A stretch of DNA of 64,000 nt from Phallusia mammillata (GCA_965637545.1 OZ281494.1:31558001-31622000), one strand, 5' to 3'. Positions 10,201-64,000 are shown, counted from the first letter of the stretch. A program made the numbers and translations. The notes: generated by a model not told the origin, from the sequence alone.

Positions 10201-13200
10201 ACGTGAAAATAACGTTGAATCTTTTATCTTTCAGCATTAGATTCTTGTTTGTATGGATGTGTTTGTAGTAATGCAAAACGGATTTACCTTCTGTGAAATC
10301 TGCATGTGGTCCCCAGCTACGATAACCTTGGTACGGTCGGTTGATGCAAGGGTCAGTGGAATTATCGCTTCACATTCCATTGCCTTAAAAACCATGCGAA
10401 AACACTTAAACCAGTGGCGACACAAAGAATTACAATAGCGTACACCGTGGCGAAAACACCTTATTGAAACAATTTTGCACAGCTAGGTCGTTTTTTTATT
10501 ACTTTACGGATGAATGGGCATATACACGCTTCACCGCAACGGCTGTTATAAAAGTTTACGTTTTGATGCAAAGTCTGTTTTAACAGTAGTATAAATGTTT
10601 TTCTGCCTTCAGTGAGAACCCTTTAATTAGGTGTTTTACAAGTACCTGTAAATGAAATGCACAAATATAACCATTATATTTCCGTTCCACAAGTTGTGGC
10701 CTACAACTGAGACCTCATAAAACTTCACAAAGCCGAAACGAAGTTTAACCCATGTAGCTTATACCTGAGCCGCTTCGTCCAGAAAGATGTGTGTAAAAAC
10801 ACCGTGTAGACCAGTAGCTTTAAGTCCCAACACCAGAGCAGTAGCAAATGTGGTAATAACCACGCGCACTTTATCTGAAAGAATTTCCTTGGTAGTGGGA
10901 TAGCGAAAAGTCGTGTGATGCTCGTCCATAACACAAAATCGGCGCACCTCCTGTAATGATAAAGATGTGAGATCAAATGTGCTTTATTTCGTAATGGAAT
11001 AGTCAAAACAAACACAGATGCAACTGCAGTTTAAATTCAACATAATTTTTTTTGATTTAAGTTCATGAAAAACATTTGGTCATTCGTCCTATTTTGATAT
11101 ATATATATAACTTAGTTGAATTTAAAATAAGATGATTTGCAATATTGGTCATATTTGTACCTTATACATACGAAACTGCTTTTTTACAACTTAAAAACTG
11201 AAATGGAGTAAATCACAGTACGCCAGGCCCAGTGAAGGTGCCATACCGAATCAGCCGGTCACCAAGCATTCACCACCATATGGCAAGGCGTAGGCTAGAA
11301 AAATCTAGCCTGCGGTGGGATTCGAACCCACGACAGCAGTCTTTCCGGGACTCGCACTCTACCAACTGAGCTACGCAGGCTCACTGTGATTTATATATGA
11401 GTGTACTGTGATCGCTGGTTTGCATAGACGCTTTAGGGCTGATCCCAGTTATGAATTTATGTTCATCTTAAATGAAATGGTGCATTAGCTGTATTCTGTA
11501 CAAAACGTAGCTTAAAAACATCAACACATAGGTCTATCATTCATACATACCGGTGGGACTGACTTGATGATTCGGTCATGGTAGTAAACTCGGATGATTT
11601 TTCCATCCCACTCATCACCACGAAAGTTGTTTTGTATGTACAAGTCGGCAGCACTAAAACACGATCAATACCATGAATTAGCAGATGTGACAAATTAAAT
11701 ATTTCCCTAGAGTGTTTGAATTGATTTCGTATGCGCGTTTAAATTTGCACCTAAAACTTCAACAGCACATCGGTAAAAGCTTGTAATGGTTACATTAGAA
11801 TTACGATTCACAAAAATTCCGCTAATTCAACGGTAAATAGTGCTAAAAGGAAAACATTTAGCTAAATTCACACAAGTTGACACTAATTGCACAAAAAATC
11901 CAAACATCTTGAATAGCAAATGAGTTGACCAATTCGTTTGTTAGGCAAACAAGTAAACAAATCAGTGCCAATACCAAATGGTACATACCATAACCCTATC
12001 CTACCCATGCTTTGTTTAATATACGGCCGAACTCCTTCGAACAAACCGGTTGCGTTATGTTTGCTTTGGCAATCATGTGATACTCGATACGACCTTTGTG
12101 GTAATTACGTCATAATACACACCGCTGTGTGTTAAGCTTTTGTAACCCGAAACAAAGACAAGGCGAGAATCTAGTTTCGCTTGCCTTGGCTACACTGGGT
12201 TTAAACTTTAAACGCCCACGGAAAAATGCTTTCTGTGTTTACAATACGATATTCCCACAGCTATTTCAACTCGGCAAATACGTAATGTAATATTTGTACA
12301 CTATTGCACTGTGATCGACTTTATGTTTGGCAAACATTGAAAGGGTATGCAACATATGACAAAGTGGGAATAATCTAAATTTCGATTGTACTTCAAAGAC
12401 GCATTTTGTATCTGTCGCTAGCCACATTACAGGATTTCAATAACGACCGTCAGTGTGTCTATTTGGCCTTAAATCTAGTCTAGCCGCTGGATCCGTACTT
12501 CTACTTGACAAGGAATATTAAAATAATGCTTCTTTGTCCCCCGGCCCCAAACAGGACCTTTTCAACCAGTTAATTAGAACTCAAATATCTAAAAAATGAC
12601 TTTCATCAACGCACGACCGCCAGTAAGTTATTTAATTTAAGTGTGCGCAGCCTTATGAAGTTGTGACCGCAACGATATGACGGTACACAGTTGCAGGTTG
12701 TATATACCTCTTTCTGGTTTATCTTTTAAATTGCAACAAGTGCGGTTTAACACCTAAGAGTAAAAGCAAGTTTTGTTGTTAAATATTATTCGCGAAACCT
12801 GTCGGGCATTCTCGTGGACTCAGTAATGGATTTTATACCTGTTTGAATGTGTACAGACGAGAATCTTTGCTTGGGTGTAGTGTCTCAGTAGAAACAGCAC
12901 ACATTGACTGATGGTGTAGGTTTTGCCTGTGCCGAAAGGTCCAACCACAGCGAAAAGTGGGTACGTAACACGGTCTTTGATCAAATGCTGAAGAACACGT
13001 ATCTGAAAAAACAAAGTAATTTTCTGGCAACCGAATTTTTTTGGGGTTGTTAAAAGCGTTTTGGGGGTCAGTCGCTGGTCTGTTAACAAGAAACCTTTGT
13101 GATTTGCTTTTCCATGCGGCAACTTATATTGTCACTGGTATCAAATATAGCAACAGCTGGCCGTAAACGATTGAGTAGTCCTTGTTTGTTTTTGAACGAG

Positions 13201-16200
13201 AAGAAAGTGAAAGTAAACACACATGCTTAACCACATGTAAAGTGTGGCAATTACCAAGTACACAGCACATGTTTTAGCCAACAGACGCATCCAAGCTTGT
13301 ACAATACACAACAACATATATATTTCCACTAAAAAAACGCTGAGTTTGTAGATGGCCAGAAAAGTCGTTCTAAACTGTATGGGAAGTAAGTATATTTTGG
13401 TAGCACACATGACGCTTAAGGTCATTTTCAACAAAAGGATTAAACCCACCGTTATTGCCAAAGCGTACAGAGACGCCCTACCCATTGTAAACTGAAACCA
13501 ACAAACAACTGTTGTAAACCGGCTACCACACATTCACAAAAAGATAATTACGCTTTCGAGAGCTTGGCTTACTCTAAAACAAAGGTTGGTTAGCTGAAAT
13601 ATCCGGCTAGTAGTAGTATCCCCTTTGTAAGTTACCTACTAGTGAGAAAGTTTTGTGTCACAATTTTCGTTGGGTTTTCACCTGTTAAAATTACCCTAAA
13701 TTTCCTGCTTGGACAACATCAAAAATTCAGACAAAGCAATAATAAAATTGTGATTTAAAAAATAGTACGACCCGTTTAAACCTTGGAGATCTCGGCTTTG
13801 GTCTGCGGTTTGGCAAAGGTTACTGGCCCTTGCTGGGAAAGCAAATACTTTTACAGACTACTACCTGTTGGGGGTCAAGTTCACGGCAATTTGCGTTGGA
13901 GTTCGCTGGGTGCGTGAGGTCAGACGACGGAGGGTCTGGACACACAATAGAAAGTCTGTCAAGTTCTGGAAGTTGGTCCAACGCACAATGGCTCATGCAG
14001 AACAAACGGCGGTCAAGTTGAAACTGAAGATCACACTCGATAAGCAGACCAGATCGAAGCTTCCAGTCTTCCACACATCTATGTTGAGTTCAAATAGGTT
14101 TATGTTCTTGCTTGAGTTGAGTTTATTTGGCTTGGTAAAAGAAAACGAAGCGACACTATCGAACTAAAATGATCACCAAGCCGGGAATGGCTGCGCAACG
14201 TTAAGACTTGGAGCGCAAAACAATGAAATGGAGCGCAAAACAATGAAAAGCACAATTGGCGGATAATGGCTGAACGCGCTGCAGCTATAGTGTATTATAA
14301 AGCGTAATATGAATGGACAAGAAAGTGAGGTTGGTGCAGTGGCGGTAAACACGACTACTGGCGTTGTTGGAACAAGTAGAGGGGGTCCTAAAACTAACCA
14401 CCCGTGTTAGGGAAAGAGGGTAAGGTTCGATAGCAAAGCCGTGAAGTAAAAGCGCTGCAGCTACAAAACGATGTTTCTCGGCATACAAAAGACTATGGTA
14501 CATACATTTGGGTAAACTGTTGAAAACTACATGCACAACACAGCTGTCAGAACATTTTCGTTTAGCGCTGTATAATACATTTGTGTGTTACTTATACCTT
14601 TTGGAAATTGAAAGCACTGCATGATCAGCTGCTTTGCTCTCCAATCTTGCTTCGTAAACTGTAGAACTCTGGTCACTGTTCTTTCTTGAAAGAAGCACCT
14701 AAAATTACAAAACAAATATTTCCAAAAAACTTGTATATTTAGAGGCATAAACAGGTTTTCTAGATCAGTGATTCTCAACTCGTTTTGGGCCATGGACCAC
14801 TGGTCCAGTAAAAATAATATCATGGACCATTTCATTTTGGAGCAAGATTGAGGTACGCATAAGAAACAACCATTTGGGCTCGAAACAAAGTTCTTTAAAA
14901 CCGATTTTCAAGACGTGACATACAATTATTAACAGGCAACGTTTTGATACTCTTTCAATATATAATATGCATCATCTCTAGTTTATCACCAAATTTAGTG
15001 GACGTCCTGTGGACCACTCAAAAAGTCATCATGGACCACCAATTGAGAACCACTGTTCTAGACCAATAATTTTCAGTATAGTGCTAATAATATTGAAAAG
15101 TAATGTACTATGCTTTACCCTTACCATTTGGCAGTTTTCTAACACCAGTAATCCCTCATCAGTGTCTCGATTAAGGTAACCAGGTAGTTGGAAGATTCCA
15201 AACAATCCACCTTTACCATCAACAAAACATAAGCCTCCAGACGTTGAGAAGTAATTGTCTGACAATCCTATCTTGCAGGAGCAATACACTCTGTAGTAAA
15301 AAAGTTATTATTTTGACACTAAAACCTAACAAAATTTTCAGTTAGAACAGAAAAGGATAACACATTTGCAAACATATGTTATTTTTTCTACAAGTGAATA
15401 TTTTTTTTTCATGTAAACTTTCACAAAAAGTTTTTATGAGGAGATTTATTTCATTTTTAAGGCAACATTTCCAAGCCTTTCCGATGTGTAATTCTATGAA
15501 ATATGAATTCAAAATCTACTTTCTCTTAAATCTACTTTCTCTAAAAATAAATAATAAAAAGTTTATTTGCAAAAACCTTAAAATTTTATAACAGCAGCAT
15601 TACTTTGAAATTGCTTGTTTTCTAGCTGCTTCCTCTCTGTACAGAAATCTGTGCATTTCTGACACATAGTTTTCCTTGGTAAGACTTTTTGAGTCCAAAT
15701 CTGCATCAGAGTCATCACTCACATATTCAAGTGCCACCTCACGAGGCTTGTACTTGTTGATCAACTGTTGCATAGTTTTCTCAAACTCATTGTGAATCTC
15801 AACGGCAAAAGGCACTATTTGTCTATTGTAGAAACAAACATATAAGTTCACAAGTATGATTTTGCCATTTCACTACAATTTAAAAGTTTCTTCTGCTTGA
15901 AAAGATATGTCTGTTGTAGAAACGATTTTTATAAAATGTACGTACATCATTACAAATACATTTGAACCATTTTTTAAAATCCTAGATATTATACCTTTTT
16001 TCCCAGCTATTCGAGTCAGGCATTTTCGGCCGTTCTTGGGAAATACTGATTTTGTCCCCAACAGAAACATGAAACTTCACCATCAAAGCAGGCCTTGGGT
16101 TTTTCAAAAACTCAAAGACCAATACTTCTGCAAATTTTCCTGGTTTTGGACTTTGAAACTTCACCTAAAAACAGTCAAAGACACCAATCAAAAGGTTGAA

Positions 16201-27795: not shown

Positions 27796-30700
27796 ATGAA
27801 GCGATACGTGGCTCAAAGTGAATTGGGTAAGGTTGTTTGTGGGTAAACAGGAATAGGTAACGTTGCAGACATCAGCCGAGGCTAAAATCGAAGCACCCGT
27901 GTCAGGAAAAGAGTTTAGACAAATAAAACCGAAAAGAACCACAGCACAAAACTTTTATTGCAGTTTTTATGTGGTGTAAGTGCGTACAGTGTTTAACATT
28001 TTCTTATTTTAAACGGTATCATGGTTCTCTTTTTGCACCTATTTACTCAATACAGCTTTGAACGCTTTAGAGTGTTGAGTTTACATGTTTGTCAGTTATC
28101 CCCAGTAGGTCGGTGTTTTATTTCTGTCAACACTGCAATGGGGTTTTAAGATAGTTAAACACTGAATGGGTCCGGTTGTAAAGTAGTGTAAGCAAAGAGT
28201 TTCATTGGGAGATTTATTATCCACTCAGCAAACGTAGCCAGTTTTTAGCTGCGCAAGTCCAGGCTACAATACTCCGCAAAACAAGATTGAGTATAGTTGG
28301 ATTTGATTACAAGTAGCGGAAAATTGGCAATAAAGCACCTATTTTTGTAAGTTTAAGACAGGGCTTGGAAACCTTTCACTCGTGAGAGCCAATAAAATCA
28401 AAAGTGTTTTAAAGTGTATTACTTCGAAAGCCCTACAATCAGTGGTGGGATTCAGCCGGTTCGCACCGATTCTATAGAACCGTCTTACGAAATTTTATGA
28501 GATCAGGGAACCGGTTACCATTACTGGTTACTGTCAATGGACTTTTTGTAGCAGAACCGGCTAAAAAACATGACTTTTAGGATAGAACCGGCTGACAAAA
28601 AAATGGAATCGCACCACTGCCTACAATATATGTTTACTGATAAACGCTATTCTGCTACAACGCCATTTACCACATAGAAGACGCAATAAAACCTTTTTAC
28701 AGTTGTATTTATTAATGTTCAAGTTTTTTTCATTCTATTTTAGGGGCGAATCAGGTTCATTTGATAGTACCGCAGTGTCTGTGTTAGAATAAAATAAAAC
28801 ATACAATGTGGAAATAACGAAAAACAAGAAATCATCAGGATCGAAGTTTTTCGGGACCACTGCTGATTTTTACCCATCAAACACAACTTGGAATAACAGT
28901 CAACATGACTTTACTTTCACCACTTCAAACCTACAAAGGTGTGTTAATTATACCGACTTGTTGTTTACAAAAATACGCTTGATATTAAATTACATAAACT
29001 TAAACGCATTTATTGCCTTAAACTGCTAACAAACTGGAACGTGATCAAATGTCATTTTGACTTGATTTGTGACTTGTTTTAAAGTTTCAGTCATACTTTG
29101 ATGATTTAGTGACATTTAGAATTTCAATCATAAGCTGCTTTTGCTAAACCTTTACAAAATTTGGCTTTATTGTTTGCAAAACATTCACTGCCATATTTTT
29201 ACAGATTCGTCGGCCAAAGATACGCCCCTGAATCAGTGTGAAAACCTGGAAGAAGTTTTAAGTGAAATCACTGGAGAATTAACACAGGTAACACAGCATT
29301 TTTATTGGTTCAAAGCGTTACCCATCCAAAACCAAAGAAAAACATGTGGACGCATATTTTTACTGCATATAAAAGATCTTTTATCACTCTTCTGGGTTTT
29401 ACTACACTGTACATTTCAAGTGCTGGTAAAAATTTACCTAAGAAAGGTTGTTGTTGTTTTTTTAAAAAAAGCTTAACAGGAAACGTTTATCCATTTGAAA
29501 GACAATCCTTGTTGAACAAAACAGAAATTATTAATTTTACCAAATATGACACTGTAAAACAAACTCGTGTGCTGCACATGTCAGCATCATAGTAGGGGAT
29601 CGCCAGTTCGACTATTAATCGGTTAGGATGAACACAAATTCAATACTGGGATCAGCTCTGAAGCGTTTACGCAGACCAGCGATCACGGCACACTTAGCCT
29701 ATATATAAATCATAGTACACCAGGTCTAAATTGAAGGCCTGATACAGAATCAGCCGGTCGCCAAGCATTTCCACATATGGCAAGGCGTGGTCTAGAAACA
29801 TCAATGAGAAACCAGTTAAAAATCGGTTTCGCAAGATTTAGTACTTTTTCTTACTTATCCAGGTCCAATGGATGGGTATTGCAAGTTGGCTTCGTATCGA
29901 CCCAGATAAACTCCACCTGGTGTCCACTGCAAGTGGGTGCGACCTCCAGCGGCAGAAAACTCTCGGTTTGCTATGCTGGATTGAGGATGAACCAAGAACG
30001 GCAACGTTTGACCGCTTGGTGGCAGCATTACTGCAAGTTCAAGCTTCGTCGTTGGCAGGTAAAGTTTCAATGTGCAGCAGAAATTCGTCTGTAAGGTTGT
30101 AATACTGTAGCGACCATAGTCTGAATGGTAAAATAGTTGTTTTTATGATGCGCCATGTGCCTAAAGTCATATTACTGGTTTTACAACTGTATTGTGACGT
30201 GAACGTACGTCAGATTGGTCATAACAATGACATTTTAATAGAGTCGGTATTTGGACAATGCACTTTTGTTCTATTCTAAAGTAAAGAAACTGTTTCTTTG
30301 TCTCATGATTTTTAACAAAAGCACAGACAAAGTGAGGCGTCAAGCTGCATATAATATTGCTGTTACATAAACTTATTGTTTATATTCCACACTTACGAGC
30401 GTTGTGATTTTACCAGTTTGGTCTATTGATCATCCAAAGTTGCTAGCTCGGAGATACTCGGTATATAAATCTTTTGAACCTCGTTTTTGCCTTTGCAGGT
30501 GATGTAAAGACTTTTTGTCGGATACTTACCATGCGAAGAACGAGCCACACCCGCAAACACTTGTCACTGCAAACTCAATACTACTCCATGCAACTCGGTC
30601 CCCAATCTCGATATCCACAGCTACCCAAAACCGCTCTCTCCCAGGGCCAGTGGAAGCTTGCGGACATGCCTCTACCCCAATTCCTTTATGGTTCACCCAC

Positions 30701-56892: not shown

Positions 56893-59800
56893 ATGACTTC
56901 GTTGTATGCTGGATTTCGTCCTGGTGGCCGCAAACCTAGAGGTAAGTGTTAGTAAAAATAAATTGAAAAAAATCTAGGCAACTGTATTCATTTGAAACTT
57001 ACGCAAGATTTACAGGCATCGTACTTACTGTCTTAACGAAAAATATTTACATAAGCGGCCTAAATCACCTACTAACTATAAACATACAATTATTTCAGTT
57101 GACTATGCCAAATCTATCAGCGGCCTGTATGCGACTTCGAACAGAGACCAGAAGGTGGAGGTAAAAGTCGACGTGGACCAACCAGGCCCATACCAAACAG
57201 CTCTAAACATGATAAGTGGTACTCTGGTCGTTACTGGTGGACAAAAATGGTAAGGAATATACACGACTTGGTTTTAACGTAAAATCAACGTTTTGCAACC
57301 CTGTATTTGATGTTTAGACGTTGGTAGATTTTTAGCGTTATGCGTTTTGTTTACTTATTGATTTTTTTTCTTTTTTGGTGGTATGTTTGTGTTTTATAGG
57401 TCGATGATTTTGTTTGTGTTTAGCAAACAAGTGCGAAACGTTCTGTTATGAACTAACCTACGTTTTTGTGCGTTTACAAATCAATATATTAACAGGGAAA
57501 TATTAGGCTCATTTAGTTATTGGGTGTTTTACATTTAATTTGTGATCTAATGGATACCTCCACTGAACCTGCGTAGCTCAGTTGGTAGAGCGCGAGTCCC
57601 GGAAGAACTGTTGTCGTGGGTTCAAATCCCACCGCAGACTATATTTTTTCGCCTACGCCTTGCCATATGGTGGTGAATGCTTGATTAACGAGTGATTCGG
57701 TATGGTGCCTTCAATGGGCCTGGCGTACTAATTGTCTTACAATGCCGATTTTGTTCTTAAAATAGACCGCCTTAACATTTACTTTGAGAACACATAAAAT
57801 CACGTTGCAATAATAACAACGTCGGCCCCAATGCGAATTTTACACTAATCTAGTAAACTGGTTGTTTTAAAACTAGTATATGAAACATTAAAAAACAACT
57901 AATATTGTTTTTGATACTTTCATAAAAAATCTAATGCCGATTTAATTATTGGATGAAACTGCCCCAACTTAACTAAAGTTTAATGGTAAAAATAACGGCC
58001 CATATATAGACGTAAAAAGCGACATGCTTTATTTTTCAAACGTTTCGGTAAATGATCATGCCATCATCAGCTTTTTACATCTATATGGGCCGTTATTTTC
58101 ACCAATAAACTTATTAACTAAAGTCGATGCAAATCATAAAACAAGTCGGACTTTTTTTGCTAAATAAATTAACTAAATCACAATAACAGACACAATTTGA
58201 CCATAACCCATTCTAAGCATATTCCATCGACACAACTCTTAACTTTGAATATTCAAAGGACTGGAAAATCGACTGCTGCATTTTTTCGTTCTTATGCGGA
58301 CGGAGTGACTGTGACGTCACAGACAGATGGCACCCACGTGACCGCTGACGTGAACGTGACCTTGAGTGACGGCGGCAAAAGGGAGGGAACCATTACTGCC
58401 GTCGCGAAGACTGCAGGGAGACTAAAGCTCGACATGACAATCAAAATCGAAAACGCGCTTTTCCAATTCCACGGTGTTTCCCGGCAGAGTCAGGTATTTT
58501 TAATCAGTCAAATTCTGGCTTGTTTTTGTATGTAATCACCAGCGAAGGATGGCAACATATTGGTTTGTTTGTTAGTGCCGACCTTGCCACTGCTTTTTAC
58601 TGATTAATGTACAAAATAATCATAAGATCTAACGTATAGGTATGCTCCCTTAAAATTATTATGGTGTCTCACAAAGTCTTTACCCATGTGTAGGAACGTG
58701 TAGTGATGGGTTTAACGGTAATGTTCGCTGATGAGTCTCAAGGCTATAGCCGCGTCACTACAAATTAAAGAGGTATACCGTCCTAAACCTCCCGAGCTTG
58801 TCAGGACCGAGTCCTGCAAACTCCACACAAGTGTATTGCACTTCGGTTCGTTTCTTTATTGCTTCTGAAAGGCACAAGAAAGGGAAAGAAAATAATCGAA
58901 ATGAACCAGTGCGCTTTTATATATACCCGAGATAAAGGCGTTAAATCGTACACATGTACTATTGCGTTTGGCTCTTGCACAATTCCCACATAAAGCAACG
59001 TCTAATCACGGCACAGCACAAAACATACGGTTAAAGCACGTAAACACCAGATCACGAAGTCGCATCTACATCCTTATTAACTGCAACAGGAAATATTACA
59101 AGTTCGAACATGATTTGTCATTACAGTTGAATTAAGTTACTACACATTTGAACTTCCTCGCAGGCTTTGAGCTAACGAGTCAAAAACGAGCTATTTTGGT
59201 AAACAATTATTGCAAAGTTTGCACAAATTATGTCGCAATCGCTACAAACGCACTTCACTCGATAAGGCGTAAATGTTTGATAACATCAACTATAAACTAA
59301 ACAAAACTTAACAAACTTATTATGTTATAAATTGTTTTGGTGGCTAAGGAAACACTTTATTACCATTCGTTAAAAGTTTAAACGTACCACAGAAAATGGA
59401 AACACATTGCAAAAGCTAACATTGCTTAAAAAGCATAATTTCCACGAGATCAAACTTCCTGATGTTGCAGTAACACCAACATTTACCTGGCATCAAAATT
59501 TAGGACACTAGGTGAAAAGCGTAGCGTAAGACTTTGTATGATGTTACTATAAGAACCGTTCGATTGATTTAGAAAAACTGCCGAATATTCGGTTTCGGTA
59601 CGAACCTAATTTTGACGAATCGTTGCATTATTGGTTTTTTAAACTGACAGATATTTTTAACTGACCCTTGTGTTGTTGAACTTATTTACGATTCTCCAAA
59701 ACACCTTTTACAATACGTGAGCCAACCAACGACCTGAAATTTTGCAGACAAATTTGCTCGTGTTTTCAAAACAAAACAATTGTTGACAGAGTTGTAAACG

Positions 59801-62800
59801 GGCCTGAAACTGGAGCCCGAACCCGAATCGTCTTTGCGAAGACCCTTTGGGCCCGAAAGTTTAGTTGACAGGCCTAGAAGCCTAAGAAAAAAGCAAGACA
59901 AACACAATAGACAATTGGTCTTAAACAAGGCGTTTTAGGACTATTTGACATTAGGTCAGAACCAGCAACTGGCTACTTAGCTGGCTAAAATTATTCATAA
60001 AAATACTGACACAGAGTGTAAAGTCAGGCCCGAATCAAGCCATTTTTTTAAGAAACCCAAGCCCGAAATACCCGGCCCGATTACACCTCTGATTGGTGAA
60101 TCTGCGATCTTTCAAAAATTAAATCGATGATATTGAAAGTTTAGGCATTAGGTTTATGCACGTAAAAAGTTCCGGCCAAAACTAAAACATCCGCACAACT
60201 GCATATTGAACCGAAATTTCACTAGTTTAAACCCCTGCTACTTTACAGCACTTCCGTGACGTCACATTGGATATTGATTACGTCGACAAGAAGGTTTGGC
60301 CAATCATAGAGCTCAAGGATTTCACCACTGGTCCGATGGCCAACAGAAAGATTGATTTGTTTTCAGTTTTTGAGGATGCTGGTTTGAAACTTCGATATGA
60401 TGACGCTAATTCAGATAAGGTGAACTGTTTAGGTTGTTTTTATTAAATTTTCATAGAATGTGTAAAAAATATATTTACATTTTTTTTGTAAAACCGTTTT
60501 TTTCTACAAATCTACTTGACAAAAAAAGATATCACAAAATCCTGCTTTATTTGTTCAATAATTGTTTTCAAACAATATTCGATGTTTTTTCATTTCTCAA
60601 AATTTCTGACAATTTTTTGCTCCCCAGAAATAAAAAAATCCTAATATTAACGTCACAGGTTGCAGACCCGACACCAGGGACAGCGTGGAGCATGGCAGAC
60701 ATGTCAGCTGTAATGGATGACTTCTTTGATGAAGGAGGACTGACTGATCAGCACATTTGGTGTTTGATGGCAACTAATCCACCAGATTCAAGATACATGG
60801 GCTTTTCATTTGACAATAACAAAAAGAAGGGCTTCGGTCTGTTTCTTGGGTAAGGATTAAAATTAGGATAAGTTGTATTCCTACATCCTATATCAGTCAG
60901 TACGAATGCCTCAATAATAACATGTAAGGAATTGATTTCTAGTCCAGTTAATATATACATTGAGCCTTGTCGTGGGTTTTTTGAAAGTAAAAACTGTTTT
61001 TGTCTTTTAATCAAATTAGGGAATGCCAAATTGTTCCCTAAACTATACGTTAAGATTATTTGAATTGTAAAACATATTCTTCCAATTGCAATACTGTTTT
61101 TACGCATCTAAATATGTGTTAAATGCATTTTAATTCGAAGCAATGTATCAAACAACTTATAAATCGTACCATACTTTAAACTGATAGATTTTTTTGTGTT
61201 TAGCCACACTTCCTTTAACGGAATGGAAAGCGACGAAAAAAAGGTGAAGGTGAATGCTACGCGTCGTTTTCTCCACTACCTGGCGCACGAGTGCGGTCAC
61301 TGCCTTGGTCTTTCCCATCCGTTTGAAGAAGGTGATTTTAACAACGTTTCACCGAACAAATATTTAAACTTCTCAAGTAATGTTTATTGGCTACAAAACC
61401 GAATGCAATCATGAACGCCAATTTGACAACTCCATTTCCTTTGTCTGTCTTGAATGACTTGTCCTGTATTGAAAGATCTGTTCGTTTAATATAGGCAATA
61501 TATACTTGCAACAAAAGATCCATAAATTTAGCTTTTGTGTCTGTTTTCCCATTCACTGTATAGTCAAGAGTCATCACTATAGAACAGTGATTCTTATACT
61601 TTGCATTAAAAAACTAAAATTTCCTTCCGCGGCACACTTCGCAGGTAAACATAAAAAAGCTGTTCAAATAATATTCATTTTCAACTTTATTGTGATGGGT
61701 AAGGATGTTTGTCATTTCCAGTAACAAGAATACTAGCTTAGAAACATTGTCATGCACACCAGTATTTCGTCACAAAGTCCTAAACACCAGGAAATATTTT
61801 CACTTTAAAATATAGAATATTTCGCAGAGCACAATTTTCTGGACCTTTTTTCGATTTTCAGGTTTTCTGGGGGGTTCTAGAATCAATTCCAGTCTACCTT
61901 GCAGCGCTAACCCTAATCATAAAGTATAGTAACGTATTATTCTCTTGTAATCTTGCTAGTGTCAAAAGCTTGTGGGTTCTAATCCCGCTTCAGCCACTTG
62001 TGTTTCACTGGACAAAAAAGTTAAACGAAATGCTGAAAACCCACAGTAAAAAACAAAACTAAATAAATATTGATTTAACGGACTTATAATAAACACCCAA
62101 CACTACGACGATCGTATTCTAAACACAACACTGTCCGGCGCCGAGAATAAGAATACAACAAATAAACAAATTAACATTTGCTTGTGTCTGTTTAGGTAAA
62201 TCTGATGCCTTGTCGTGGATGAACTATGCATGGAAGTACGACAGTTTGTACGGAGCTGGGTCTTTCTACGATTTCTTTAAATATCAATTCTCTGATAATG
62301 AATTGGTGATTTTACGCCACCAACCTGACAAGGTAAGTTGCATATTCTACCAGTTTTTTTTAATGCGAAATTGATTTTATTATCCGCTTTCCAACTACAT
62401 TTTATATTGAAATCAGTATCAACTGGTCGTTTTGTTAAAAATATACTAAAACAACAACATGTTTAGTATACTTGTCAACAAAACCAGTTTAGGTCTAATT
62501 TACAACTGAAGTGCTAAAAAAAAAAAAAAAATTAAATATTTATTTTTACAAACAAGTGTGTTATAAACTTTAAAGGGGTTCTCAATCGGGGGCCCATGAG
62601 GTATATTTTACATAATTTGGTGGCATATTTACGTATGGAAATATTTATGCGAAATATGCAAAACTAGTGGTACGAAAACGCTTCTATTATGCCAAAAGAA
62701 AAACTTAAGAAAATGCGTTTGAAAACCTGGTTCTAAAGCATCACGTATGCCCCAAAAAACGTTGTGCATTTTTTTGTCTGCAGCCTTTCAAAGACGCTTA

Positions 62801-63998
62801 CGAGCAAACCTGTGGTGAAGAATTCGAATTTGCTCCTGGAACAAAGTCCAGCGCTCCTGATGCGGATTCAGATGATGAGAATGATGAAGATGGAGAATAC
62901 GGGGATCAGAGTCCGAACAAGAGAGCTAAGATGGATGGAGCAAGAAGAAAAGTGAAATTCAGCATCAAGTTCAGACCTAAGCCTTATCAGAAGGTAATTT
63001 TAATTAATAATAGAAACTGCTTTAAATGTAGCTGAAACAAAAACTCAACTTGTAATGATGACAACAGCTAAAATATTTTTCATCTTTGTAAACAAAACAC
63101 GTTGTAACGTCATAATATCACTGTTCACGTGTATGACGTCACAAGCTTGTGGCGCAAAACGAAAGCTCAAACATCCATGAAACTATTGGTTTATTATCAT
63201 TTTAGGGTGATATCGTTGAGTTTGAAGCGACCATGAAGAATGTTGGCCGGTTACCGTGCAAAATTGAGCCGGGATTCGAACCCGGAACTGGAAATCTAAC
63301 TGTGTACGTCACTAATCCAGAAGGTGTGGTCAAGGTAAGCTTCAACGTCTTAAATATGCTGTTTCATATCTTTATTGTCTGTTGTCATCTTCGACCTTAG
63401 GTTTTGTGCATGATATAGTAAGTTCAACGTCGTAAGAGTATTGTTTCATGTCTTTATTGTCACTTTACGCTGTCCACAAAATGCAATCTCTTCATTTTGT
63501 AATTGGTCGTAACCTTGCTCAATAGTTCAGCAAACAAATAGTTAATTCTCCAAACTGGCAATATTTATTGTGCCTTTAGGAGTGCTTGGAAGTTCGGCTT
63601 GATTCGGCATCACCTGACAAACTATGATTTATATTTTGTATCGTGATCATTGGTTTGCATAAACGATTTAGCGCGTATTCCAACAATAAAAAAAAAATTA
63701 AGTTTAAATTTTGGGCAGCTTTTCGCCACTAGAAAAAGGAATGTGTGGTAAACAAAATATTGTTACTGGGCTAAACGTGTTTGAACATTTTCACAGATAG
63801 CCAATCCGCTTGTTCGCACTATCGACCCGCCAACTCGTCGCTTTGTTATTTTGGGGAAACCCGGAAGTCGAGAAAACTCTGACACGTACTGCGAGGTGGT
63901 TCCCCTTTTACAGTCCTCCAAGGGACCTCTGTTCAATAAGATTGGAACTTATGTTGTGAAAGCTGTGTACGAAACCACTGGATTTAAACTCACTTCAG
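56893..63998 (+). CDS. Metzincin-type zinc metallopeptidase-like protein without a signal peptide (bacterial-like); continues beyond the right edge
   Basis: Exons: 56893-56941, 57099-57249, 58259-58493, 60249-60419, 60659-60849, 61204-61331, 62196-62332, 62784-62993, 63206-63334, 63797-63998 (534 codons, all junctions GT-AG and phase-consistent). Zinc motif HECGHCLGLSHP at 61286-61321, Met-turn SWMNY at 62213-62227. A beta-rich N-terminal domain precedes and an Ig-like C-terminal domain follows. Confidence 0.9.
57567..57729 (+). mobile_element. tRNA-headed SINE copy (head+body, no tail)
   Basis: Near-identical to the reverse complement of 11215-11380, with the same A/B boxes and body ccttgccatatggtggtgaatgcttg...gggcctggcgtact. 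Confidence 0.85.
57976..58112. repeat. ~46-bp imperfect inverted repeat (fold-back) in intron 2 of the metallopeptidase gene
   Basis: Left arm aagtttaatggtaaaaataacggcccatatatagacgtaaaaagc. The right arm reverse-complements to aagtttattggtgaaaataacggcccatatagatgtaaaaagc. Confidence 0.85.
59787..60091. mobile_element. MITE of the cagagttgtaag family (hAT-like)
   Basis: TIR cagagttgtaa / ttacacctctg; TSD attgttga / attggtga; multiple gcccga motifs. Confidence 0.75.
61586..61828. mobile_element. Truncated copy of the 20753-21035 MITE family
   Basis: Starts cagtgattctt. Internal gcggcacact.cgcaggtaaacata...gaaacattgtcatgcacac...cactttaaaata.agaatatttcgc is shared with 20800-20995. Confidence 0.75.
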
Positions 63999-64000
63999 GT

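Follow-up and report, generated by a model that had tools for sequence, protein, structure and literature searches.

An expressed, intron-bearing gene of an almost purely bacterial protein family, with a predicted metzincin fold, in the sea squirt Phallusia mammillata

How does a sea squirt come to carry a gene whose protein family is almost purely bacterial, and what kind of protease does that gene encode? The question is raised by a ten-exon gene on the plus strand at positions 56893-63998 of a 64,000-nt stretch of Phallusia mammillata DNA (GCA_965637545.1 OZ281494.1:31558001-31622000), the whole of which is here called the window and is numbered from its first base. An earlier interpretation made without database searches (the sequence-only reading) had taken the gene for a bacterial-type metzincin of the serralysin (M10B) branch, possibly acquired by horizontal gene transfer. 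As set out below, the bacterial family had been named rightly and the serralysin branch wrongly, whilst horizontal transfer is plausible but unproven.

The ten exons join into a single open frame of 534 residues up to the exon end at 63998 (1605 nt, or 535 codons, when read to base 64000), with GT..AG borders at all nine introns and an in-frame TAG 24 nt 5' of the predicted ATG at 56893. RNA evidence was drawn from 16 small runs belonging to four studies and covers the stretch 58200-64000, exon 1 and its junction lying outside it; about one-fifth of the sampled words of this stretch were present in the 16 runs, which is approximately the exon share of the stretch. Assembled RNA contigs were compared with the same stretch in four runs, one per study, and in each of the four the seven introns between exon 3 and exon 10 are skipped exactly as modelled, the removed introns being GT..AG ended and the junctions showing no other differences. 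A loose contig end also carries the final 30 nt of exon 2 directly before exon 3; the start codon and the join between exons 1 and 2 are predictions. The exons of the sequence-only reading were thus correct, seven of their junctions being seen in RNA from four studies, whereas its implied end of the gene was not. All four runs depart from the genome after 63998 with an identical 30-letter in-frame continuation, the window has a GT donor at 63999-64000, and the contigs of three runs reach 1.9, 3.0 and 3.3 kb beyond exon 10. Because the transcripts continue in frame beyond 63998, the ten-exon open reading frame (ORF) is correct but incomplete: the window holds roughly the 5' two-thirds of an expressed sea-squirt gene, and the C-terminal third lies outside it. 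From the bacterial architecture described below, ~0.7 kb of coding is still to be expected after exon 10, far below the 1.9-3.3 kb of extra transcript.

The family to which the product belongs had been described, in the sequence-only reading, as one of bacterial, often actinobacterial, hypothetical metallopeptidases; such a family exists, is commonest in Actinomycetota and is colinear with the window protein. When an exon-7 alignment from three eukaryotic genes was scanned against one genome per bacterial or archaeal species, the profile found 18 bacterial loci, mostly in Actinomycetota (Thermoleophilaceae, Acidimicrobiales, Geodermatophilaceae and Motilibacter) together with Acidobacteriota, and most of these loci carry an intact ORF of 660-870 residues. 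Residues 23-528 of the spliced model align with residues 46-544 of a 723-residue Acidimicrobiales protein at 25% identity (140 bits), dozens of other bacterial members score 130-152 bits against it, and against a profile built from 82 bacterial members the spliced model reaches 197 bits (E = 5e-53 at Z = 1.84e9). Exons 2, 4, 5, 6, 7, 9 and 10 match the bacterial profile in colinear order over positions 32-557 of 735. There are 105 profile columns conserved at 95% or more in the bacteria; 89 of them are covered by the window protein, which is identical at 53 of the 89, including H349, E350, H353, H359, M372, N373 and Y374 in the numbering of the bacterial family. By these sequence comparisons the window protein is homologous to the bacterial family along its whole in-window length, and the motifs picked out beforehand (SG.Y...VDVD, WS.A.M, MG..FD, LSWMNY.WKY, F.F.D.EL...RH and a beta domain ending in AVY) turn out to be the conserved blocks of that family.

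With the Acidimicrobiales protein as query, more than 1045 family clusters were recovered among only 8000 scored candidates, with sources in Actinomycetota, Chloroflexota, Myxococcota, Bacteroidota and Gammaproteobacteria. Members are ~750 residues long; the clusters are annotated 'hypothetical', save one 'PAS domain-containing protein', and none carries a Pfam domain. Plasmid records contribute members from Rhizobium, Methylobacterium, Bacillus megaplasmids and a haloarchaeal plasmid, and the overall range comprises at least seven bacterial phyla (Actinomycetota, Acidobacteriota, Chloroflexota, Myxococcota, Bacteroidota, Pseudomonadota and Bacillota) in addition to the haloarchaeal plasmid. 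In the ESM Atlas the family's clusters have 94-100% bacterial membership, Actinomycetota being the most frequent, and no eukaryote-dominated cluster was found among them. No model for the full-length bacterial proteins exists in Pfam, NCBIfam or PADLOC, no family match was obtained in the phage collection, and a signal peptide is absent from all bacterial members examined. The bacterial genes are isolated among unrelated genes on megabase-scale chromosomes, and no conserved operon was found in their neighbourhoods, except in one actinobacterial subfamily with a downstream ORF that is discussed further below.

With respect to the active site, the zinc motif HECGHCLGLSH occupies residues 294-304, i.e. 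His294, Glu295, His298, Gly301 and His304, and is followed by Pro305; SWMNY lies at residues 315-319 (LSWMNY at 314-319), with Met317, encoded at 62219-62221, standing 13 residues after His304, and with Tyr319 two residues further on. The zinc ligands and catalytic Glu align with the invariant H349, E350, H353 and H359 of the bacterial family, and the Met-turn Met is invariant in 82 bacterial and three eukaryotic sequences. Since the three His ligands, the general-base Glu, and the Met-turn Met and Tyr are all kept, we infer that the product is an active zinc endopeptidase, probably an intracellular one. No hydrophobic N terminus or transmembrane segment was found in the window protein (maximum Kyte-Doolittle 19-residue mean 0.75), in line with the earlier remark that it has no signal peptide; that remark also noted the lack of a cysteine switch and of astacin, ADAM and matrix metalloproteinase (MMP) accessory domains.

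The fold was approached by proxy, with AlphaFold2 run from an 82-sequence alignment on the bacterial homologue that is closest. In the four-domain model (predicted local distance difference test score (pLDDT) 89; predicted template modelling (TM) score 0.84) a beta domain spans residues 48-185 and an alpha/beta catalytic domain 216-410, followed by a beta sandwich at 430-558 and a helical domain at 564-722; folded alone, the catalytic domain gives a pLDDT of 80. Compared with 48,161 chains, the catalytic domain has metzincins as 34 of its 35 best matches, the match at rank 21, a chaperone-substrate complex, being unassigned. The structural Z values are 9.4, 9.2 and 8.9 for archaemetzincins (PDB 3lmc, 2x7m and 3zvs), 9.0 for adamalysin, 8.8 for ADAM17, 7.9 for ulilysin, 5-6 for MMPs, 5.2 for serralysin and 4.5 for astacin. 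Domain-level Foldseek gave metzincin matches only, but weak ones (E of at least 0.1), and a whole-protein Foldseek search of the bacterial homologue was uninformative; a profile search of PDB sequences was without match, and exon 6 gave motif-level matches only. As modelled, the catalytic domain is of metzincin fold, nearest to archaemetzincins and adamalysins. The beta-sandwich and helical domains would probably select or hold the substrate.

We then have to ask where else in eukaryotes the gene occurs. An exon-5 search of 1.84e9 representatives returned two short exon fragments of eukaryotic type, besides three repeat proteins that are spurious matches; in the metagenome contigs behind the two fragments the gene recurs at 40-58% identity, with its exons bounded at the same places. 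An exon-7 profile search of 5.8-billion clusters returned three exon fragments, and among 241 million metagenome records eukaryote-type copies were found only in four Joint Genome Institute (JGI) metagenome samples carrying the same contigs. The JGI copies represent three paralogue types, respectively 74% (loci L025-L027 and L029-L032), 60% (L001-L004 and L033-L036) and 57% (L037-L038) identical in exon 7, and are present also in ENA counterparts of these samples; a separate ENA long-read assembly has two further copies (L005/L024/L066 and L028). With at least three paralogues in the JGI contigs and two in the long-read assembly, the animal family has evidently been expanded by duplication. 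No second copy was found in the 64-kb window by tblastn of the spliced model. The related eukaryotic loci have intron positions in common with the window gene, their DNA aligns with it in exons only (66-73%), and no SINE (short interspersed nuclear element) or other repeat element common to them and the window was found.

In the phylogeny the eukaryotic sequences form a single clade with 100% support, whose stem joins a polytomy from which Thermoleophilaceae-type, Bacillus, Methylobacterium and archaeal long branches also arise. On the core bacterial profile the animal protein scores 197 bits, compared with 146 for the Methylobacterium and 116 for the Halocatena member; because it outscores both, it lies within the divergence range of the family in prokaryotes. 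As the family is almost purely bacterial, a bacterial origin of the gene is probable, and an old bacterium-to-animal transfer is the best reading of these sequence data, one that we favour without holding it firmly. Most economically, there would have been one old transfer from bacteria to the animal lineage, after which introns and an acidic linker exon would have been gained, duplication would have given rise to at least three types of paralogue, and the copies would have diverged rapidly. Several considerations weigh against so reading the gene and its product. The eukaryotic stem is very long, at 3-5 substitutions per site, and its attachment point is a polytomy, so that the tree gives the clade no rooted, supported place inside the prokaryotic sequences; none of the bacteria sampled is close enough to stand out as donor, all of them showing ~23-28% identity; the structure is the model of a bacterial homologue and not of the sea-squirt protein, and the case for activity is made from residues. 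Exon-level searches, moreover, cannot reveal annotated full-length proteins or distant relatives in other animals, which limits our confidence in the transfer.

That gap in what the searches could see bears on the alternative of vertical inheritance, within an old family of eukaryotes or of metazoans, or of a transfer far older than tunicates. Great age would fit both the ~25% identity to all bacteria and the very long stem, and it would fit a family that is deeply split in prokaryotes, where the Bacillus, Methylobacterium and Halocatena members are as far from the core as are the animal copies. A vertically inherited family is nonetheless unlikely in view of the ESM Atlas clusters, which are 94-100% bacterial and never eukaryote-dominated, of the confinement of eukaryote-type copies, amongst 241 million metagenome records, to four JGI samples with the same contigs, and of the protein searches with exons 5 and 7 (1.8e9 and 5.8e9 sequences), which gave only five exon fragments.

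A different challenge concerns function, namely that the gene encodes a pseudo-protease devoid of catalytic activity, which would be retained for binding or as a scaffold. Inactive zincin-like domains do occur in bacterial conflict systems (PMC8195603), which provides a precedent, and the present family is known only from its sequences. Yet all the zinc-binding and catalytic residues, the Met-turn and 60% of the near-invariant positions have been kept despite an overall identity of ~25%, and the same residues are kept in the other eukaryotic copies, such that loss of activity appears distinctly improbable, and a working endopeptidase is the more natural prediction.

The proposal of a secreted serralysin-type (M10B) metzincin has already been contradicted, and we give it next to no weight. 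It derived from the match of HECGHCLGLSHP and SWMNY to the signature residues of serralysins, which are also among the weak sequence matches to exon 6. The Pro after the third His, however, is not a conserved feature of the family: it is found in the window gene, in L025 (of the 74% type) and in the L001-type paralogue, but at least 95% of the bacterial members, and one eukaryotic relative, have Ser instead. Taken together with the ranking of structural Z (5.2 for serralysin, 9.4 for the top archaemetzincin), this identifies the protein as a metzincin other than a serralysin. At the level of family hidden Markov models (HMMs), NCBIfam Zn_serralysin was tried and rejected, at 17 bits against a cut-off of 500, as was Pfam Peptidase_M10, at 19.4 against 24 and on the exon 6 motif only; the Pfam matches of exon 6 to M10, reprolysin, M43 and M54 are weak, motif-level and all under the cut-offs, and besides these sub-threshold matches no Pfam or NCBIfam match was obtained with individual exons. 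A signal peptide is lacking, and the catalytic domain is followed by a beta sandwich and then a helical domain in place of an RTX beta-roll; no such roll was found in the window part or in the bacterial homologues, and no GGxGxD repeats in the window exons, the part of the gene beyond the window being outside this view.

Bacterial contamination or an assembly chimera, which the otherwise prokaryotic distribution of the family might suggest and which the sequence-only reading had rejected on account of the introns, is refuted by nine GT-AG introns, by spliced RNA from four studies, by intron positions common to other eukaryotic contigs, by a host SINE in intron 2 with another copy 46 kb upstream, and by a gene GC content of 36-38% that matches the remainder of the window (evenly 34-40%, without N), all of which place the gene, expressed, in the host genome.

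The transcript beyond exon 10 leads to the question of what lies downstream, on which the related loci are informative. The C-terminal helical domain of the family is encoded there (L024:16109-16333, matching profile positions 674-734 with E = 2.6e-4, and also L068:12387-12605), and the helical-domain exon is followed by a short conserved exon ending ...SG[LI]GL[GE][MK]; the stop codon directly after this motif is also a phase-2 GT donor. In two loci (L066 and L025) the next conserved exon, 0.3-0.6 kb on and on the same strand, is Hemocyanin_N-like and has no in-frame ATG. That likeness has no Pfam or PDB support by itself, and the haemocyanin assignment rests on a downstream match of L066:14356-14640 to PF00372 Hemocyanin_M (E = 3.5e-7, over the curated cut-off), with copper-A histidine motifs YWRSDGDLNYHH and HWH...YMHQQMLARY in L066. 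The haemocyanin-type exons (L066:12514-12715, 13137-13286 and 14356-14640; L025:16439-16652), those of an arthropod-type haemocyanin/phenoloxidase gene, are on the same strand as the metzincin-like gene.

The metzincin-gene exon of L025 can be joined in frame to the haemocyanin-type exon through strong splice sites, the donor being GTGAGT and the acceptor ttttcag, and the 3.3 kb of transcript past exon 10 in the sea squirt is about the length for ~0.7 kb of metzincin coding plus a haemocyanin ORF. It is therefore possible, and we offer it tentatively, that the metzincin is the N-terminal half of a haemocyanin chimera of ~1400-1500 residues, or the first gene of a tight co-transcribed pair, and so might act as the built-in or dedicated activator of the sea-squirt prophenoloxidase. 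A fusion is disfavoured by L066, in which the splice phases mismatch and the gap holds a candidate first exon with a signal-peptide-like MKFFFSLALF... beginning. Fusion, operon and mere adjacency are all possible relations of the two genes.

The exons of the window gene, all on the plus strand, can be assigned to the domains as follows. Exon 1 (56893..56941) is the predicted start, with 16 codons and 1 nt between the ATG and a GT donor. The N-terminal beta domain begins in exon 2 (57099..57249; ISGLY...VKVDVD, AG/GT borders, profile positions 32-90), continues through exon 3 (58259..58493), which is present in spliced contigs from four runs, and ends in exon 4 (60249..60419; profile 181-240), where the catalytic domain starts with FRDVTLDIDYV. 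RNA junctions flank exon 4 on both sides and were likewise obtained for each of exons 5 to 9. Exon 5 (60659..60849; profile 251-302) encodes the first helix and edge strands of the catalytic domain (W..A.M, MGFSFD, GFGLF) and keeps W254, M263, W280, G294, F297, D298, G314 and F318, which are conserved in the bacterial family. Exon 6 (61204..61331) encodes the active-site helix, with HECGHCLGLSH at 61286-61318. Exon 7 (62196..62332; profile 365-406, E = 6e-16), encoding the Met-turn LSWMNY and the C-terminal helices of the catalytic domain (ELVILRH), is the best-conserved exon, with 44-61% identity to bacteria over 41 residues, except for one broken locus. In two of the four runs the RNA contigs differ from the genome by T>C at 62278, a third codon position of this exon, which is presumably a synonymous polymorphism. 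Exon 8 (62784..62993), an acidic low-complexity linker, has no match in the bacterial profile or in the related eukaryotic loci. The beta sandwich is divided between exon 9 (63206..63334; GDIVEFEATMKNVG, profile 456-497) and exon 10 (63797..63998; GTYVVKAVY, profile 500-557 of 735), the latter not being the last exon.

Intron 2 contains a tRNA-derived SINE-like repeat at 57564..57729 on the plus strand, with a 76-nt tRNA-like head at 57566-57641 that ARAGORN calls 'tRNA-Ser GGA'. The upstream copy, at 11217-11383 on the minus strand, is 167 bp long and 89% identical to that in intron 2, and a partial copy lies at 29713-29788, also on the minus strand. Elsewhere in the window, coiled-coil-rich ORF pieces at 41532-50980 on the plus strand look like exons of a large coiled-coil protein gene and have no significant Pfam match; no sign of a functional link between the metzincin gene and its neighbours in the window was seen.

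Some observations on the prokaryotic members deserve separate mention. Shorter, divergent members are plasmid-borne, in Halocatena salina (L070:2833-4449), on a Bacillus thuringiensis megaplasmid (L069:3905-6007) and on a Methylobacterium conjugative plasmid (L071:2854-4542). The segment after the third His in the Methylobacterium protein, AFDDGRDSALTWMNY, is strikingly similar to that of the sea squirt, PFEEGKSDALSWMNY. The one actinobacterial subfamily with a conserved neighbour has an ORF of ~175 residues directly 3' of the peptidase gene (L009:4153-4692, L011:4148-4693, L013:4246-4788, L014:4147-4659, L015:4124-4627 and L020:4147-4659), without match in Pfam, NCBIfam or PADLOC. Because its sequence pattern is small-beta-sandwich-like, and because the peptidase's own sandwich resembles BsuPI protease-inhibitor models (Atlas TM 0.68), the ORF could encode a cognate inhibitor. 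In the Bacteroidota member Maribellus sediminis (L064:8640-11414) SIR2_2 and DUF87/HerA-like genes come after the peptidase gene; such a pair is characteristic of anti-phage islands and was seen, among the contexts examined, in this species only.

The overall results expose a very large prokaryotic family of multidomain proteins with a predicted metzincin fold, comprising more than 1000 clusters in at least seven bacterial phyla and on a haloarchaeal plasmid, which is in effect an undescribed metzincin family, apparently intracellular, with no Pfam, NCBIfam or PADLOC model and no solved structure; a keyword literature search found no publication on it. An invertebrate chordate holds intron-bearing, duplicated and expressed copies with a complete active site. 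Should the gene prove confined to tunicates, it would be, like cellulose synthase and rusticalin, a bacterial gene domesticated by the animals most closely related to vertebrates. Should the haemocyanin link prove true, its product would be a concrete candidate for the protease, long sought, that activates the phenoloxidase system of ascidians, a system concerned with cytotoxicity and allorejection.

Comparison with the known metzincins helps to place the protein. Archaemetzincins are intracellular metzincins without a signal peptide. Their structural likeness to the modelled catalytic domain (MEROPS M54) is the best obtained, over 137-156 residues at 11-14% identity; they are, however, small single-domain proteins with HExxHxxGxxHC and a Cys4 second zinc site, whereas the window protein is multidomain and its family has Pro or Ser at the position of that first Cys and no such Cys pattern, and the Pfam M54 match to the window motif reaches only E = 0.085. 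The adamalysins, ADAMs and ADAMTS proteins (M12B) and ulilysin (M43) have the fold in common (structural Z of 7.9-9.0), and in pappalysins the Met-turn is followed by Tyr, as it is in the window protein; the latter differs from M12B and M43 enzymes in having no cysteine-switch prodomain, disintegrin or thrombospondin (TSP) domain, no secretion signal and no significant sequence similarity to them. Serralysins have HExxHxxGxxHP and S.M.Y in common with it, and differ in structure, HMM scores and RTX repeats.

The closest system is the bacterial family itself, as exemplified by the proteins of Acidimicrobiales (ACKV2O_22045), Nonomuraea solani (SAMN05444920_111107), Paenarthrobacter (RI444_05110) and Bacillus thuringiensis (WP_080470901.1). 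As far as the window reaches, the family and the animal protein have in common the domain order (the G.Y...VDVD beta domain, the catalytic domain and the beta sandwich), the conserved sequence blocks and the lack of a signal peptide; the animal gene differs in its introns and extra acidic linker exon, in an identity of ~25%, and in having Gly where bacteria have Asn in HExxHxx[G/N]xxH and Pro where they have Ser after the third His, and the related eukaryotic loci have additional conserved exons beyond the bacterial-like C terminus. As to its history, the nearest parallels are the published bacterial-to-tunicate transfers of cellulose synthase and of rusticalin (PMC6339383 for the latter), which belong to different protein families but are likewise of prokaryotic type, intron-bearing, expressed and duplicated in ascidians.

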